From Calcarisporiella thermophila CBS 279.70 (taxonomy: Eukaryota > Fungi > Calcarisporiellomycota): DNA of 64,000 bases. Each line of letters begins with the position of its first letter. The first letter of the stretch is position 1. Below the pieces are notes generated by a model. It was given only the letters and a program-made list of their open reading frames with translations, made no database searches and had not been told where the DNA came from. Positions 43,807 through 55,122 of this stretch are shown in pieces. The stretch lies in NCBI RefSeq assembly GCF_041956535.1, contig NW_027192217.1, positions 240,196 through 304,195 of the forward strand. The letters run 5' to 3'. The position numbers and the translations under genes were made by a program.

Positions 43807-45149
43807 CTAAAATACACGGGCATAGGCTTCGTCGTCGCCATCCGACTCCTCACCTCCATCCGGCCGGGTGCGTTGTCGCTGCGAGTCCTCGGGCATCTCC
43901 ACCATTTGAAGGGGGGGTGGCAGCTGGCTGACCCGTTCGGCCTCAGCCAGCAGCCACTTTTCCGCCTCTGGGTTATAGGGATAGGTGTATCCATCTCCGA
44001 TTGAGTTTGAAACGGGTATAAACCAGAGCCATGGAGAAGGCCCCATCACACTCTTCCAGTTGCGTTGATATCCTATATACCACAAGTTCTGATCGCCCGC
44101 CACCACCACCTGCGGAGATCCCGATGGGAGCATCACCCGGACATAGACCGGACGCCCGTCTGAGATGGCCTCAATGGTTGTCTTGTTTAAGAGTATGTAG
44201 AAGAGATGGGTGAAGGTGAAAGCAATGAGCAGCAGCCCAAATAAACCAGTGACCACGCAGAGTACGGCAATGAATAAATCGAGTTCGGTGGTGCCCATCA
44301 CAGCCTTGGCCAATTCTGCCACCGAGGTTGCGAAGGTGAATATACACAAGAGAGCGGTGTACATGACGAAGAGGAAAAAGAGCTTATAGTTCCGGAAGCC
44401 AACGCATTGGTTCACCCAGGGGCAATGACTTAAAAGTACGATCGATAAGTAGGGGATAAAGGCAGAGCGAATGTGTGTATAGCTTACTGGTCCATTTTCA
44501 GCACGCACAAATCACAATCGGAGCAATGATGGCACCGGTCAGGCTTATTGCATCCGCATCGCTCACAATACCGGGGCGTTCCCTCGCGTTTGGTAATAGC
44601 AAACATTGGCATGGCAATTGTATCGTGCGTCATAGAGTGCAAACTCAGAGCGGAGGTGGAGGCATCATTGGTTTGCTCGGCTATACGCTTCTGGAGAAAG
44701 AGAGGGCAAAAAGAAATGAGAGATGGGGAGATCGAAGGGCGAAAATGGAGGAACCAACATTGGTTGGATGGCCTGGGTTTCGGGAGACGACTCTGATATA
44801 GCAAATGAGGGCAAAAAGGAAGAGAATGTGGAAGGGTATCAAGTAGCCGACTAAGACCGCAAATAAACATAAGCATTTTGCCATCCCTAAGAATCCTAAG
44901 CTAGCTCACCTGCTTGTCCGATCTTATTATCTCCAAGTAGACCTGCTATTATATCAGGGCAGAGGGGATGGAAATGGGATTAATTAGTCCTTTGTCATCC
45001 TATTCACTCATCTCATAGCGGCTGAACTTACTTGTGCATAACCGAATAACGAAAACATAGTAACCAAACGCAAGCAAGCCCACCACAACTACCGGAAGCA
45101 GATAGCCTACCGCCCTTGCAGCTGTGGGAAACCTGTTCTTATTTCCCAT
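43807..45149 (-). CDS. DHHC palmitoyl-acyltransferase (Pfa3/ZDHHC2-15-20-like)
   Basis: [47 protein letters not shown] motif; NW.SVMG....LWFIP...GDG..YP (PaCCT-like motif). Confidence 0.93.
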
Positions 45150-46552: not shown

Positions 46553-48043
46553 TCATGTGGTGGCGGCGGCAGAGGCAGTGACTGTGGTAATAGGTGGAGG
46601 CGAGGTCGAGGCGGTGGGCGGTGATAATGATTCTTCCTTCTCCAGCACGATCTTGTTTTTTTCGCACTTCTCCACTTCCAAGACCACCTGGTCTTCTTGA
46701 AGCTCTTCGCCCCTATGGACGATTTGGACGCAGGCTTCCAGCACGCGCCCGAAGAGATTCTCGCCTTCCCCCCCTTCCTTCACACCCAGGACCCCGTCCC
46801 AGTGCTTGACGAGGATGGGCCCTGCGCCCACTCCCTTAATCGCCTCCAACCGATCGGTTAGCCTGGGGAGGAGCACGCTGACGACTCTTTTCACGCGTAT
46901 GTCAGCCCACTCTGCCCCTTCGACAAGCGCATCTGCCATTGCGGGTAAGTTCTGGAGGGGGGTTAGACACACTGCCTTTGCAAGAGCCGCGGAATTGTCT
47001 CCGCATTTACGCGCCCATACCCACCAGTGTGTTAGGCTTGGAAAGGACTCGCCTTGATCGCTCACCGGAATCTGATCCGGGTGCAGTCCGCGATCGTCGC
47101 CCGAGTCGATGCTCAGGGCCGCAGGTTCCGCGCGGGGGGGCGGAAATGGGTCCACCCATTCGCCCGAGTAGGCGCGACGCTCCTTGTCCCACCACCAGCG
47201 TAGATTGAGCACGGGGTCGACGCCTATGTAGGCGACATTTGGGTCGGCCGCGCGGGGATTTGGCCCCGGGCGAGAGCGGGAGATGCTGCAGACGAGGTGG
47301 TGCGGAGGGAGAGGATGGCCGGCGGCTGTCGTTGCGGGGGAGTGCCCGTTTTCCATGCGAATTGATTTGCGCGGGGAGCCGGAGGTGCGTGCGAGGGAGG
47401 ATGCGTGCAGGGGTTTCAGGGGGTGGTGGGGGTGTTTGGAGGGGGAGACGTGGGATTGCGAGTTGGCGGAGGTGGGGAGGGATATTGTCGTGTCCATTTC
47501 GTCGAGCTCGTCGAGCTCCTCCTCGTCTAGGTCGTCGTCATTGTCCGCCTGCTCGTACATGGATCTCGGCCGTTTTTCTCCGGACGACATCCGCGAGGGC
47601 GTTGTTAGGGTGGTGGAGGGGAGGGAGCCGGAGAGGGAGGCGCGGCCGAGGGATATGGAGGGGAGCGGGGGCAAATCGGAATCCTCGTCGAGGACGGATC
47701 GGATTCTTGCGGCGGTGGCGGCATGCGTGAAGGAGAGGGACGGCTTGGGCATGGCGGCGGGGATCTTGGGCGGCGTGCCGTTGAGATTCAGGTGTGAGTG
47801 CGAGGGCGAAAAGGCGTGGATGGAGGCGGACAGTGCATGCGGGGGGGTGGGCGGGGGCGGGAGGGAGTTGAGCTGGAGCTCCTCGCGCTGCTGAGCGGTG
47901 AGGTGCTGCGGCTTGACGGGGTGGCCGTTGGGCTGGAGCGGCCAATGCGTGCATCGCATGAGCTTGCTCCGACAGGGGCCGCAGAGGTGGTCGCAGCGCT
48001 TCTTCAGCGACCGGCAGCTGTCGCAGCGAAAGCGTCCCGACAT
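46553..48043 (-). CDS. Intronless putative transcription factor with an atypical Zn(II)2Cys6-like N-terminus
   Basis: MSGRFRCDSCRSLKKRCDHLCGPCRSKLMRC, then Pro/Ser/His-rich and acidic segments and a Trp-rich C-terminal domain; long GC-rich ORF. Confidence 0.7.
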   Translation of the reverse strand: MSGRFRCDSCRSLKKRCDHLCGPCRSKLMRCTHWPLQPNGHPVKPQHLTAQQREELQLNSLPPPPTPPHALSASIHAFSPSHSHLNLNGTPPKIPAAMPKPSLSFTHAATAARIRSVLDEDSDLPPLPSISLGRASLSGSLPSTTLTTPSRMSSGEKRPRSMYEQADNDDDLDEEELDELDEMDTTISLPTSANSQSHVSPSKHPHHPLKPLHASSLARTSGSPRKSIRMENGHSPATTAAGHPLPPHHLVCSISRSRPGPNPRAADPNVAYIGVDPVLNLRWWWDKERRAYSGEWVDPFPPPRAEPAALSIDSGDDRGLHPDQIPVSDQGESFPSLTHWWVWARKCGDNSAALAKAVCLTPLQNLPAMADALVEGAEWADIRVKRVVSVLLPRLTDRLEAIKGVGAGPILVKHWDGVLGVKEGGEGENLFGRVLEACVQIVHRGEELQEDQVVLEVEKCEKNKIVLEKEESLSPPTASTSPPPITTVTASAAATT

Positions 48044-49252
48044 GATCGTAATCCCAGGGTCTGGCTGCGGAATGAATCGGCGGAAATCTCCTAGCAATCG
48101 GATCACGCAGAAAAATGGAAAATGCAACGGGGGAGGCGGGCGGGGGCCGCGGAATGGTGCGTGATCAGGCGGAATGGGAAGCAGGGAGGGGCGGATTATT
48201 TATATTTTTTTTTATTTGTTGCGTGGCTCCCTGCACTAGCAGCGGTGACGCAGCCCGCAGGCATTCTGGTCCGCCAGTGGCCATGCCCCGTTTTCGCCGC
48301 AGGGCATTTTTTAGCCCCTATACACACTCAGCTGCGTCGTAAATTAAATGGTCCAGGGAGCCAATGTTTCTTCAGCCCTGGCGAGGGGAGCCCGGCGACC
48401 GATTCGCATTCCCGGCATCGGCGCGTCCCCGCACGGCCGGGCGGTCGGGGGCTGAGGGCCGGCGGCGGGAGCGCAAACGCGGCGTGGTTTGGGCTCGGCC
48501 GCCCCTTCACGCCTCGCCGCTTGGTGCCGGGGAAAGAGGAATGGCGGCGGCCCGGAAATGGCCAGCATCCTCCAATTCCAGGGCGCCAATTGCAGGCTCC
48601 GGCTCATGTCCGCTAGCTGTGCCGAAGCTCATGTTGATGGGATGCGCGAGCCGCTCGATGGGGGCGATGGCGAATTAGAGTTGCCGGCGACTGCGCTGGC
48701 GGGCGCCGCTGGGGACTATATCGGGAAATGCGTGGGGCTTGTTCGCTTGTGGCCGAGACAGGAGGGCGTGCCGCAAGCCCCGCTGAAATGCTGGAGCCTG
48801 GGGCGATCGCTTATCGGAGAGGGGGGCCCAGTGCGCGCAGGGCGCCATGCGCTGCCAAGTCCGTCTCGTCTTATGGAGACCGCCGTCCCATATGCCCAGC
48901 CGAGCCCGCGGATTAGAATTTCAGGCGACATTACACAAGGTGTTTCGAAGAATAACCTTAATTTTATTTGAGAACAAAAGCAGCCTCGCTGTTCTTGTTG
49001 TTGTCCGATCTTTAATGCCCGGTAATCTGCCCTTTGCCATCCCCTTGTCCATCCTTCTCTTGTCGTTCCCGCCTTCCTCATCCTATCCTCTTTGACGCGC
49101 CTCCGCTCTTAATCGCGGGCTCATCCTGCCATTTCGATTCCGTCTGGAAGCCCATCCTTATACCCCTTCATTACCCCCCCCCCCTCCATCTAGTATCCAT
49201 CCTTAATTTATTTGATCGATTTAATCCAATCCTAAAGCTATAATTCAAGCGC
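48044..49252. promoter_or_regulatory. GC/CpG-rich divergent promoter region shared by the Zn-cluster gene and the chitin synthase
   Basis: 1.2-kb head-to-head intergenic region rich in CGG/CCG and GGCGGG, ending in a pyrimidine-rich leader before the ATG at 49253. Confidence 0.55.
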
Positions 49253-52200
49253 ATGTCCGTGGATCCAGCAACCGCTATATTCACGGCAGCCGCCCATAAC
49301 GATGTAGCCTATTTTGAAAATCTCGTGCGCTCCATTTCTCCCGAGGATCTCAATGTTCTACGCAATGAGGAGGGGAAATCCCCCTTGCATGTCGCGGCTG
49401 TCGAAAATGCGGTGGAAGTGGTTCGATTTCTGTGCCAAATGCGCGAGGTGAACATTAATTTGGGAGGTGGGTCCCATTCTGAGCGCAACGAAACGGACCC
49501 ACACCTCACTAACCGATGTCTAATCTGTGTAGATAATGACAATGAAACGGCGTTATATCAAGCTGCAGCGGCTGGCAACGTTGCAGTCGTGGAAGCATTA
49601 ATTCGTGCAGGCGCGATCGTCGATGCCCCCAATAGAGTATGATTCCCATTTGAGCGCTCACTTTAACCCAGGCTCACCGATCTTGCCTTACTAGGAGGGC
49701 ATCACCCCACTCATCATTGCAGCCTACAACAATAATGTCCATGTCGTGATGTGCCTACTTGACCTTGGCCACGCAAATATCAATCACCAAGACACCACCG
49801 GGAAATCCGCCCTCACTCTCGCCGCCTACGAAGGGAGTGTCGCGTGCGTGGACGTGCTTTTAAAGCGCGGAGCCAACATCAACCTCGTGGACCAATACGG
49901 TTGGACGGCGCTGATGCTTTCGGCCTACGGCGGGCAGCTGGAGACCTGCAGGATGCTCGTTCACCACGGCGCAAACACCCAGACCCGCACAAGCAACGGA
50001 AAGGATGCCGTCACGCTGGCCAGGGAGGCTGGGCACCACCATGTGGCGGACATCATCATGGGCGGCCACGTCGCGAGGGCGAGATCGCCCGCGCCTCCGT
50101 ATCAGGAGGAGATCCCGTTGAAGGCCGTGGCCGTTCCCGACCTGCCCTCGCCCGCCAACCCTGGCCACCACGACCCGTTTGTTGCCGCAGGTCGCGTCAC
50201 TCGCTCCATGTCCAGCAAACGTCGCACCCTGGTGAATCGCTACCGCCAGAGCCACCTCGAGGCCGGCAAAACAAACCTCTCGCACGGCCGGAGCCCCATG
50301 AATCCCGGCGATGCCATTGCTCGGTTAGGCGAGCGCCGCGGGCCTGGCGATAATATCCGAAACCAGCCGCCCCCCCAAAAGTATACGTGGTGGGCCGTGT
50401 TTGCTATGGTCGTCACGTGCTGCTTCCCCAACGTGTGTCTCTCGGCGTGTCTCAACAAGAAGAACGAGAGTAACCGGCAAGCGTGGCGAGAAAAGGTGGC
50501 CCTCTGCTTCATCATCGTGTTTGTGTCCGTGGTGATGGGCTTCATGACGTTTGGGCTCTCGCAGCTTGCGTGTACGCCCATTGTGCCCATGGACCCCGAC
50601 GAGGTCGCCCAAAAATACGGACCCAACCAACCCGGGCAAAAGCTGATGATTGTCCGCGGCGAGCTGTATGATTTGGGCTCGTATTTTGCCAATGGTTTTC
50701 ACCGCCCCATTTTGCCCTACGATGGTATTGAATGCTATTACCGCACTGAGCTTGCCCTACTAGACATCTAATCTTGCACCCTGCTTGTGCTTTTTTTTTC
50801 CCCTTTAGACAAACAATTGGAGAGTATCATTAATCCGCTGTTCGGGAGGGATATTTCCAGATTTTTCCCTATTAACCGAGTTGCAAAAGGATGCAAATAC
50901 GGTCCGGCTCAGATACCAGGCTATAATTGCGAGGTGAAGGGGAAAGAGTATTGCCACGTAACACCACTAGCTCTGAATCATCTCCAAAGTCAGTCCATAA
51001 AGAGGTGGATTGCTTACACTTGGCAAAACATCACCCATCCGACCGACGATCGTAAGCTCTTCGTGTATGGCGATAAAGTGTACGATGTGGGAAAATATTT
51101 GCAATTGCCGGACGCCCTGCTGTATTTGGGCGGGGAAAACAAGATACAGATTCGTGACTGGATTCGCGACACCTTAGTGGGCCGAGATGCCACCATGGAT
51201 TTGGTCCACGATGAGAGAACGCGGGAAATTGTCAAGTGCTTGGACGAATTTCTCGTGGGCAAACTCGATGGCACCACTATTGGGTGCTTGATGACCAACT
51301 TGATCATTATTGCTGAGATGGTGATCCTGACGGGAATCATTCTGATCAAATTCGTGGGGGCGGTGACCTTCTCCTGGTTCTTCTCCTGGAAGCTCGGGAA
51401 ATTATCGAAGAAACCCAGGCCCGACGACTCCCTCTCGTACGTTCTCCTCCTGGTGACTTGCTACTCGGAGGGGGAGGCCTCTCTGCGCACCACCCTGGAC
51501 TCGCTAGCCTTGAGCGACTACTCAGACAACCACAAGCTGCTCTTCGTGATTGCGGACGGCAAAATCACCGGAAGCGGAAACTCGAAGCCGACGCCCGATA
51601 TCTGCAAGGATATGATGGAGATGAAGAGCAGGGACGACCCTGAGCCCTCCTCCTATGTGGCCATCGGCGATGGAAACAAGCGCCACAACATGGCCAAGGT
51701 GTACACCGGATACTACAACATCAAGGACCGCCGGGTCCCGATGATCCTTGTTGAAAAGTGCGGCACCCCTGCGGAAATGTCTGGCCCGAAGCCCGGCAAC
51801 CGCGGGAAGCGCGATTCCCAGCTCATCCTCATGCAGTGGCTCAGCAAGGTCACCTTTAACGAGCAAATGACCCCGCTTGAATTCGATATGTTCGAGAAGG
51901 TGCGCGGCCTGATTGGGGTTACGCCGGACAAGTTCGAGATGGTGCTCATGGTGGATGCGGACACGCTCGTGATGCCCGATAGCGTAAGTCGCATGGTCGC
52001 CGCCATGGAGCGTGATGTGGAGGTGATGGGCCTGTGTGGAGAGACCCGGATTGCGAATAAGACTCAGTCTTGGGTGACCATGATCCAAGTGTTCGAATAC
52101 TACATCTCGCACCACCTTGGCAAGGCGTTCGAGTCCGTGTTTGGCGGTGTGACGTGCTTGCCCGGCTGTTTCTGCATGTATCGGGTAAGTCTTTCATCCT

Positions 52201-53419
52201 ACTCCGCACAAGGACGGATGGGCTCACTGGTGTTTCTCTCTGTGTGTGTATGGGGGGGGGGGGGCTCCATGTAGGTAAAGGCGCCGAAGAATGGTGGGGT
52301 TGTGCCCATCCTGGCCAATCCGGACATTGTCGAGATGTATTCCTCGAACGTGGTCGACACGCTCCACCAGAAGAACTTGCTCTTGCTCGGCGAGGATCGG
52401 TACCTGACCACCCTCATGCTCCGCGCCTTCCCAAAGCGCAAGATGATCTATGTGCCAAAGGCAATATGCAAGACCGTGGTCCCCGACGAACTTCGCGTGC
52501 TCCTGTCGCAGCGTCGCCGGTGGATCAACTCCACGATCCATAACCTGATGGAGCTGATTCTTGTCCCCGAGCTCTGCGGTATATTTTGCTGTTCGATGCA
52601 GTTTGTTGTGTTTCTCGACTTGCTGGGTACGGTAGTGATGCCGGCATCACTCCTCTTTCTCGTCTATCTCTGTGTGATGGCCGGACTAGGATTCAACAAT
52701 GTCCTGGTGCCGCTTGTATTGGTGGCGGCCATGTTTGTGCTGCAAGCGGTGCTCATCCTGTTTACCACACGCAAGGTGGTCTACATCCTCTGGATGTTTG
52801 TCTACATTTTTGCCATCCCCGTGTGGAACTTCTTCCTGCCGGTGTACGCGTTCTGGCACTTTGATGGTATGTCATCCGCCGCCCAACCGATGGCCTGCTC
52901 CAAATTCCAATACTAACGATGCTCTGCCCTCTGACAGATTTTAGCTGGGGCGCGACGCGGCAAATCCAGGGCCCCGATGCCGGCCATGGAGGGGGCGGCG
53001 ATCAAGGCGAGATGTTCGACCCTTCCAAGATTCCGATGAAGAAGTGGGAGCAATGGATGCTCATCCGGCGAGAACAGCAGGAGAAGGCGATGGCCATGCA
53101 CGGGGAGACTAGGCCATTCCATGCGCAGCAGCAACACTTGGGACTTCCCCATCCACGATTCCGGCCGAGGTCCCCCGGTTTCCCTACGCCTCCGCGTACT
53201 CCAACTGGCCTGTCGCCCGTCAGGGGACCGCCCTCTCCCCACCTCTATCCGGGGCAGCCGTGGGGTCCGCCTTCTCCCACCGTGCCTCCCTCACCACAGC
53301 CGTCTCCTTCGCTGAGAGGGCCGCCGTCGCTGAGAGGACCGCCGTCGCCAAGGGGACCGCCGTCACCTGGGGGACCACCATCACCAAGACATGCAGTAGC
53401 AAAACCGGGGCATTTTTAG
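49253..53419 (+). CDS. Ankyrin-repeat / chitin synthase fusion (division 2 GT2 with cytochrome b5-like region), about 1265 aa
   Basis: Exons 49253-49466, 49533-49636, 49695-50724, 50809-52184, 52275-52866 and 52938-53419 splice in frame. About 7 ankyrin repeats, then [68 protein letters not shown]. Confidence 0.93.
53215..53390 (+). repeat. Coding tandem repeat, (R)GPPS(P/L) units, about 18 bp period at its core
   Basis: RGPPSP...WGPPSP...[26 protein letters not shown]; DNA tcgctgagagg(g/a)ccgccg is repeated. Confidence 0.8.
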
Positions 53420-53971
53420 AATACTTTTCTTTGTTTGGCTTTTTCATCTAGGCTCGCAATTTTCTCTATTTAATTATTTATTGCTTTATACCATGTTGTT
53501 TCCAACTGTTGTATACGAGGGTGGGAGGATGCATAACACGTAATTAAACTTGAATTGTTGTATGTGCTTTGCTTGCAGCCCGCCTGATCGCGGTCGATCT
53601 TCCGCCCCTGCCGCCCGCTTTGACTTGCATGGCGCCTCTGCACGCTCCTCCCCCGTGCATCCCCCGCTCTCCTCAGGGGACTGCCTTTTTAGGATAGATT
53701 TCAGGTTAGGTTACACCCTGTTTCCATTCTGGAACCTTTGTAAGCCGGGAGTCGCACAAAAAGTGACAAGCCCTATCCACTGAATCCCTATGCTTTTATT
53801 CCAGATCAGGCCTTGCTGGGTACCAGTGAAGCACAGCAACTCTGGCTCTGATTTCTGACTTCATTGAATGGTAGAAGAGCGGCCATTCCTGTCGCTTCCT
53901 AAGGATCCCACCTCCCCTTCCCCTTGTCGCTTTCTGTGAGTGTGCCCTCGCCATTCTGTTTACTCACGAAA

Positions 53972-55122
53972 ATGCCCCATTCTCTCAGTCTCCTCATCCT
54001 GCTGCTCTCCTGCCTCATCTGCCTTCCTTCCCCTGCGCGCTTGGACGAAGTCCCCTCGCCCCAACTCTTCAAGCTCAACAACAGCTGGGCCGCCCCCTTC
54101 CCAGATGCACCGCTGCCCCTCTCCAATCAAACCGCAAACTTCATTCAGCAAAATTGGCGCATTCCGAAAAATGGATTTCTGGGCGGCGCAAACACGATGA
54201 GCTTCGTCCCCGATCCAATTAGCACAACAGGCGGGTTGGCTCTGAAAATCGCCTATCCGATGGGAAGTTACTCGCCCTCTGGCGCAAAAAAACCAAACGG
54301 CGCAGGTGTCGAAGGCGGGGCGCATTTCTACACTCAACCATTTGCACCCAATGCGCAGTGGAAGAGCGCGCTATTGAGCTATTGGGTTGGTTTTCCTAGC
54401 AATTTTCCTTGGTAATGAGCCCTGTATTCGACTCAGATGATGGCGATGCTTGACTAATCATTCTCCATCTACAGGGTCAAGGGAGGCAAGCTTCCCGGCA
54501 TCTATGGGGGGGAAGGCGGCGAAGGGTGCTCGGGTGGTATGCACTCCTATGGGGACAACTGTTTTTCCATGCGCATGATGTGGCGGAACGACGGCGAATC
54601 CGAGGCCTATGCCTATGTTCCTGAGAGCGAAGAGTTTTGCTCAGATCGACCGACCGTCATATGCAATGAGGTCTACGGGACTTCCATTGCCCGCGGAGAG
54701 TTCGAGTTTAGCCTCGGCGCATGGAACAAAATCGACATGTTCATATCGATGAATGATCCTGGCAAGTCGAACGGTGTGCTGAAGGTGTGGCTGAACAACA
54801 CCATGATGGTGGATAAGAACAACGTCCCGTACAGGACCACGGACGCTTTGGGCGTCAGCCGGTAATTATCGCAAGCTTTGCATGCCTTCTTAGGTTAACC
54901 CCATATTCATGTGTGTATCCTCGTCATAGCCTGATGTTTTCGACCTTCTTCGGCGGTGCAACACCGGACTGGGCCACCCCCATCGACACATTCACTGCCT
55001 TTAGAGACATTCAACTGAGTGTGGGAGAGCAGCGATTCTCGTCCGCCCACCGCGCAATGGGCCTCTCTTGGATGGGAACCATTGCATTCACCATGTTGGC
55101 ATGCATTGGATTGCTAATATAG
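53972..55122 (+). CDS. Polysaccharide lyase family 14 (alginate/glucuronan lyase-like), secreted and probably GPI-anchored
   Basis: Signal peptide; YP.GSYSP; spliced FPWVKGGKLPGIYGG..GCSGG..CFS.R.MWR..G..E.YAY; YGTSI.RG; FSTFFGG; C-terminal SSA followed by a hydrophobic tail. Confidence 0.87.

Follow-up and report, generated by a model that had tools for sequence, protein, structure and literature searches.

An ankyrin-headed, class IV-type chitin synthase of Calcarisporiella thermophila belongs to an old lineage of early-diverging fungi

An ankyrin array joined to a predicted chitin synthase

The window, by which we mean the whole 64,000-nucleotide stretch of DNA analysed, contains on its forward strand (49253-53419) a gene in which ankyrin repeats precede a chitin synthase. 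Translation of the joined coding sequence gave 1265 codons from six exons with one terminal stop, and the five GT-AG introns measure 66, 58, 84, 90 and 71 nt. The in-frame, six-exon structure proposed in the initial annotation therefore stands, and an ankyrin-bearing paralog on contig C5 of the same genome has introns 1-4 at the same positions. The joined translation served the frame, hydropathy and composition checks; databases were searched with stored proteins or individual exons, and in the trees the C. thermophila gene was represented by exon 4 alone. The features of the gene are as follows.

49253..49466 (+): exon 1, with the start codon and ankyrin repeats 1-2; an in-frame stop lies just 5' of the ATG
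49467..49532 (+): intron 1, phase 1; codon and phase are the same in the C5 paralog and in Rozella
49533..49636 (+): exon 2, with ankyrin repeat 3 (PF00023, E 1.6e-06)
49637..49694 (+): intron 2, phase 0; the paralog and Rozella share this position, and metagenomic loci L053 and L054 have an intron at the corresponding place
49695..50724 (+): exon 3, one open frame with repeats 4-7, linker, membrane segments 1-2 and the beginning of the luminal domain
49695..50080 (+): ankyrin repeats 4-7 with a conserved groove, from entropy across representatives
50081..50384 (+): linker, rich in Pro and Arg/Lys (12% P, 16% R+K), predicted to be disordered (pLDDT <50)
50385..50573 (+): two N-terminal hydrophobic segments, aa 337-360 and 369-399, from hydropathy
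50809..52184 (+): exon 4, with the cytochrome-b5-like/CHS4-like domain, the membrane segment at aa 604-641 and the first half of the GT2 catalytic domain
52275..52866 (+): exon 5, with the EDR and QRRRW motifs and C-terminal membrane segments
52938..53419 (+): exon 6, with the SWG motif and then a Pro-rich tail; DEK-C not matched

The ankyrin array ahead of the synthase that had been read from the sequence was recovered by Pfam, and its seven repeats by the positions of their helix-1 cores. These cores start at aa 7, 43, 77, 110, 144, 177 and 210 (window positions 49271, 49379, 49547, 49704, 49806, 49905 and 50004), in tandem 33-34 aa helix-turn-helix repeats typical of an ankyrin domain. Pfam, run exon by exon, matched Ank_2 on exons 1-3 (E 2e-08, 1.1e-03 and 5e-22) and Chitin_synth_2 (PF03142) on exons 4-6 (E 3e-124, 1e-92 and 1e-05). 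Exon 4 also matched a CHS4-like domain (E 6e-10) and, weakly, Cyt-b5 (E 7e-04); of the three domains expected at the outset, the ankyrin and synthase domains were thus found and the cytochrome-b5 match fell under its own cut-off. Exon 3 is a single stop-free frame that runs from repeats 4-7 through membrane segments 1 and 2, and the case for a fusion is therefore independent of how the introns are called. The earlier argument from this exon that the gene is not a merge of two neighbours is upheld by that frame, by the paralog and by the orthologues described below.

Chitin synthases polymerise UDP-GlcNAc on the cytosolic side of the membrane and extrude chitin through a membrane channel, and their body is a processive GT2 synthase. 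The catalytic motifs of such an enzyme are intact here: DxD at 51951, EDR at 52392, QRRRW at 52509 and SWG at 52940, as first reported, and in addition QxxEY at 52086. Hydrophobic segments lie at aa 337-360, 369-399, 604-641 and about 1001-1101. The combination of PF03142 with QxxEY, EDRxL and QxRRW, N-terminal membrane segments and a cytochrome-b5-like region, with PF08407 absent, assigns the enzyme to division 2. Exon-by-exon Pfam searches found neither a myosin motor (PF00063) nor DEK-C (PF08766), and the gene falls on the non-myosin side of the tree (100/100), which places it in class IV in the broad sense of non-myosin division 2. Class V/VII membership was rejected on the same features, a lack of myosin head and DEK-C and a separate clade (100/100). 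By every sequence criterion applied, the gene is real and functional, and its intact motifs suggest chitin-polymerising activity. The product is almost certainly a membrane-integral, predicted-active division-2 chitin synthase with a class IV-type body, from an old ankyrin-bearing lineage.

The last 115 aa are 30% Pro and include an 18-nt tandem unit at 53309-53388. Across this tail (window 53100-53419) the paralog differs, yet it has a similar short Pro-Ser-Pro-Arg-His end; both may carry phosphorylation sites.

Three neighbouring genes were noted. A DHHC palmitoyltransferase gene (window 43807-44876, reverse strand) lies about 4.4 kb upstream, with no such neighbour at homologous loci; yeast Chs3 requires a DHHC enzyme for ER exit. 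Between the two lies a divergent gene (46553-48127, reverse strand) with a Cys-rich, Zn2Cys6-like N-terminus and no Pfam match at E 0.01. Directly downstream is a gene for a secreted polysaccharide lyase 14 (53924-54865, forward strand; Pfam E 8e-35), again with no counterpart seen at the homologous loci. A conserved cell-wall gene cluster was rejected, as the neighbours differ at the five homologous loci compared (L051-L055).

A diverged paralog with the same array

The C. thermophila genome (28.2 Mb, 116 contigs) contains about 20 division-2 chitin synthase loci and is ankyrin-rich, with 162 ankyrin matches. Ankyrin repeats were found at one of the 20 other division-2 loci scanned, on contig C5 at about 196.0-200.0 kb (L031; VTP21DRAFT_9165, P0302). 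This paralog is 65-90% identical to our gene exon by exon and 64% identical across the linker; the two share introns 1-4, and intron 5 is absent from the paralog. The shared introns give independent support to the exon boundaries. Synonymous sites are at or near saturation between the two (pS 0.73-0.87), and dN over the repeats is 0.21-0.25, compared with 0.18 in exon 4. Saturated synonymous sites together with low dN indicate that the repeats are under purifying selection. The public model of the paralog omits 23 aa of the second membrane segment (L031:4790-4720), where the genomic frame is open; this gap is probably a false intron call.

Ankyrin-headed enzymes in early-diverging fungi

To place the architecture among other fungi, we searched exon 4 against 1.84 billion representatives and ran two profile searches. 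N-terminal ankyrin repeats occurred on the same enzyme body in 55 of the 275 proteins scanned, near-duplicates included, and none of the 55 also had a myosin head. A profile built from the synthase part, without ankyrin columns, still ranked ankyrin-bearing proteins at the top. Among the matches listed, ankyrin-headed synthases occur in at least 23 genera, in Rozella, Blastocladiomycota (Blastocladiella, Paraphysoderma), Zoopagomycota (Basidiobolus, Entomophthora, Syncephalis, Coemansia), Gamsiella, Endogone and Calcarisporiella, and in 13 genera of Glomeromycotina (Paraglomus, Ambispora, Geosiphon, Entrophospora, Glomus, Funneliformis, Rhizophagus, Acaulospora, Diversispora, Gigaspora, Racocetra, Cetraspora and Dentiscutata). 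Arbuscular mycorrhizal fungi as a whole and Zoopagomycota retain the lineage, often with at least two copies per genome. The architecture had been thought unusual: the distinct ankyrin head holds up, but this search shows that it is no one-off and characterises an old lineage with a wide distribution among early-diverging fungi.

No ankyrin-headed member from Dikarya, Mucorales or Chytridiomycota was found among the matches listed, with which a survey of 231 genomes (PMC5353729) and Rhizoclosmatium (PMC13561034) agree. We treat these absences as provisional because the survey overlooked the Rhizophagus members. Several members that seem to be ankyrin-free are truncated gene calls, with ankyrin exons just upstream (L053, L054, L055 and L056). 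Three Glomeromycotina paralogs inside the lineage (P0103, P0301 and P0102) showed no ankyrin repeats in the protein or in nearby DNA (L057 for P0103, L058 for P0301), and may have lost the array secondarily; the 670-aa N-terminus of P0103 is unexplained. The Rozella locus (L055; P0326, GCA_003614725.1), which matches the catalytic sequence of EPZ33276.1 / O9G_001627, apparently splices repeat 3 straight to repeat 6 and so has apparently five repeats, compared with seven here. Its ankyrin exons (L055:4318-4969) were omitted from the GCA_003614725.1 gene call, and its introns are 26-29 nt. The ankyrin-free Glomeromycotina paralogs and the apparently five-repeat Rozella locus suggest that the head is dispensable in places.

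Public annotation obscures part of the lineage. P0110, P0256, P0300, P0308, P0311 and other Coemansia entries carry the NCBI label 'ATP-dependent RNA helicase', so that a search by name misses them. A chytrid enzyme of the plain class IV type, P0158 (Nowakowskiella sp. KAJ1555140.1), has ankyrin repeats at its C-terminus, either a separate fusion or a gene merge. The sole Mortierellomycotina member among the matches listed, P0265 of Gamsiella multidivaricata (KAG0364965.1), has eroded DxD, QxxEY and QRRRW motifs and a well-kept ankyrin array, and is likely to be a pseudo-enzyme. A homologue search with exon 3 returned only generic ankyrin proteins, under a length filter that excludes full-length relatives; a structure search found no cluster combining ankyrin repeats with a chitin synthase, and an ESM Atlas feature search was blank. 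No specific ankyrin donor stood out.

Evidence for a single fusion close to the root of the fungi

Phylogenies were inferred from the enzyme part, with ankyrin columns left out. All ankyrin-bearing sequences grouped in one clade in a FastTree analysis of 256 sequences (0.93). Two IQ-TREE analyses, one under LG+G4 with 80 rows and one under a site-heterogeneous model with 42 rows, both recovered a plain class IV-type clade that excludes the ankyrin enzymes (100/99 and 100/98, for a clade that has no named Dikarya anchor), and myosin enzymes formed a 100/100 clade. The catalytic-domain phylogeny proposed as a check therefore sets the ankyrin enzymes outside plain class IV. The ankyrin enzymes of Blastocladiomycota, Zoopagomycota and Mucoromycota grouped with support of 83/99 and 100/99; adding the Rozella-type enzymes gave moderate support (81/88 and 88/59), and the AU test did not reject a basal grade instead (p 0.149). 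In the second tree the Rozella-type enzymes branch first, followed by those of Blastocladiomycota and last by those of Zoopagomycota and Mucoromycota, an order near that of the species tree. The C. thermophila gene is sister to its paralog and then to Endogone. A recent, Calcarisporiella-specific fusion from a plain paralog of its own genome was rejected (AU p 3e-12).

Intron 1 (phase 1) and intron 2 (phase 0) lie at identical codons of the ankyrin array in Rozella and in the C. thermophila gene. That two introns within the repeats coincide in this way gives good support to a single fusion close to the root of the fungi. Orthologous repeats are in register in 128 of 143 cases, in a test that leans on the alignment. 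We considered whether the architecture could instead be a gene-merge artefact, or could have arisen recently and repeatedly as a mobile ankyrin module fused to different synthases. The ankyrin-rich genome and the moderate support for monophyly once Rozella is included would suit such an origin, but a single open exon covers both parts, dozens of orthologues and the paralog show the same arrangement, and the common intron positions, the repeat register and the AU test against a local origin all argue the other way; we regard it as highly improbable.

Rozella additionally carries two class IV genes of the plain type and a single class V gene, and one metagenome sample contained both a Rozella-type ankyrin enzyme and a basal plain type. 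If the ankyrin head is as old as the Rozella split, the fungal ancestor had three division-2 enzymes: ankyrin-headed, plain and myosin-headed. A different history, which we think doubtful, would make the head ancestral to all class IV, with the ankyrin enzymes a basal grade and Chs3-type enzymes derived from a copy that lost it. Chs3-type enzymes would then cover targeting by short linear motifs and separate adaptors, and the groove ligand would be a trace of an ancestral route for chitin-synthase trafficking that Dikarya no longer have.

A conserved groove suggests a cytosolic adaptor

Across 26 representatives, groove positions of repeats 4-7 had a mean entropy of 1.71 bits, compared with 2.48 on the outer face (p 0.0005, uncorrected for relatedness among rows). 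Trp5 of repeat 6 is conserved in 100% of these sequences, Lys5 of repeats 5 and 7 in 88% and Tyr13 of repeat 4 in 81% (DARPin numbering), whereas unrelated ankyrin repeats vary freely at the same sites (3.1-3.5 bits). The greater conservation of the groove over the outer faces points to a binding surface with a conserved ligand.

An AlphaFold model of the full-length Paraglomus orthologue, made from a 62-row alignment (mean pLDDT 82.9, pTM 0.63), has seven helix pairs at pLDDT 90-98, a disordered 90-aa linker (<50) and the enzyme core, and superposes on DARPin structures with an rmsd of 2.0 Å over about 225 columns. The linker was also below pLDDT 50 in a model of exon 3. No division-2 chitin synthase was found in the PDB.

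By analogy with yeast Chs3, the ankyrin N-terminus is expected to be cytosolic, as it precedes the first membrane segment. The corresponding region of Chs3 is cytosolic, binds exomer and AP-1, carries trafficking signals and takes part in oligomerisation (PMC5412288, PMC4207043). We propose that the head is a seven-repeat solenoid on a flexible linker of about 100 aa, in which the concave groove of repeats 4-7 would bind a conserved cytosolic protein or peptide and so direct the sorting of the enzyme or hold it at particular sites of wall building. The head would then be a folded counterpart of the Chs3 N-terminus and of the class V/VII myosin head. We put the probability that it serves as a cytosolic adaptor for localisation at roughly 0.6. 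The targeting or scaffolding role suggested initially is thus the best supported reading, given an array that precedes the first membrane segment and a groove conserved across phyla. The retention of the array in Gamsiella P0265 despite its eroded catalytic motifs fits a role without need for catalysis, in this one case.

The groove might instead bind the enzyme itself, at the linker, the tail or a neighbouring protomer, as an oligomerisation device or autoinhibitory switch. The Chs3 N-terminus mediates di- or oligomerisation (PMC5412288), the linker is conserved between the two C. thermophila paralogs (64% identity), and a self-ligand would likewise conserve the groove, so that conservation cannot separate an outside partner from a segment of the enzyme. 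Across phyla, however, the groove is constant but the linker and the tail give poor alignments, which offers no clear sign of a linear self-ligand, and we consider self-binding unlikely. Less likely still is that the array is a built-in activator, or a platform recruiting a regulator or a second wall-building enzyme, and alters activity more than location. Class IV enzymes rely on cytosolic auxiliary proteins, and the repeat protein Chs4/Skt5, which activates Chs3, offers an analogy; the catalytically eroded Gamsiella copy that keeps its array would also fit. Against this, Chs4 contacts another region of Chs3, and no conserved neighbour genes at homologous loci suggest a partner enzyme. The array would be a practical starting point, a soluble, well-folded bait with a few invariant groove residues, for learning how chitin synthesis is positioned in early fungi.

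Relation to known chitin synthases

Division-2 chitin synthases are classed by two kinds of N-terminus, disordered (class IV) or myosin (classes V/VII). The ankyrin head is a third, and it dates back at least to the divergence of Rozella from the remaining fungi. Liu et al. 2017 (PMC5353729, Tables S2/S3) recorded Rozella EPZ33276.1 as a class IV enzyme with ankyrin domains; PF12796/PF13637 appear in their Table S3 as present 'only in 1 CHSIV protein', among domains without a clear pattern, and no lineage was recognised. In the literature searched, the architecture had thus been recorded for one enzyme, and not, as the initial annotation had allowed, as a common class. Li 2016, Goncalves 2016, Liu 2017, a 2025 review and a 2026 chytrid paper make no mention of ankyrin in their main texts, and we found no main-text description of a chitin synthase with ankyrin repeats (including PMC4734345, PMC5122149, PMC12653383 and PMC13561034) in a search that lay mostly outside the subscription literature. 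The combination is visible in automatic domain annotation of public proteins, and no paper was found that treats it as a lineage. The ankyrin-headed lineage of class IV-type chitin synthases is apparently unnamed, and it needs adding to the class scheme because many of its members are misnamed or split in public annotation.

Compared with class IV (S. cerevisiae Chs3; superclass IV, PMC5122149), the ankyrin enzyme has the same Chitin_synth_2 domain, all CON1 motifs, N-terminal membrane segments and a cytochrome-b5-like region, and likewise lacks a myosin head and DEK-C, but it begins with a folded seven-repeat ankyrin head where Chs3 has a disordered N-terminus. It also lies outside the strongly supported clade of the plain class IV-type enzymes sampled and differs from them at diagnostic columns. 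With class V/VII it shares a division-2 body and a large folded cytosolic N-terminal domain serving localisation, a role that is putative for the ankyrin head, whereas the myosin head and DEK-C are missing and the clades are separate (100/100). Rozella EPZ33276.1 has the same architecture and introns 1 and 2 at the same codons, with apparently five repeats in its array.
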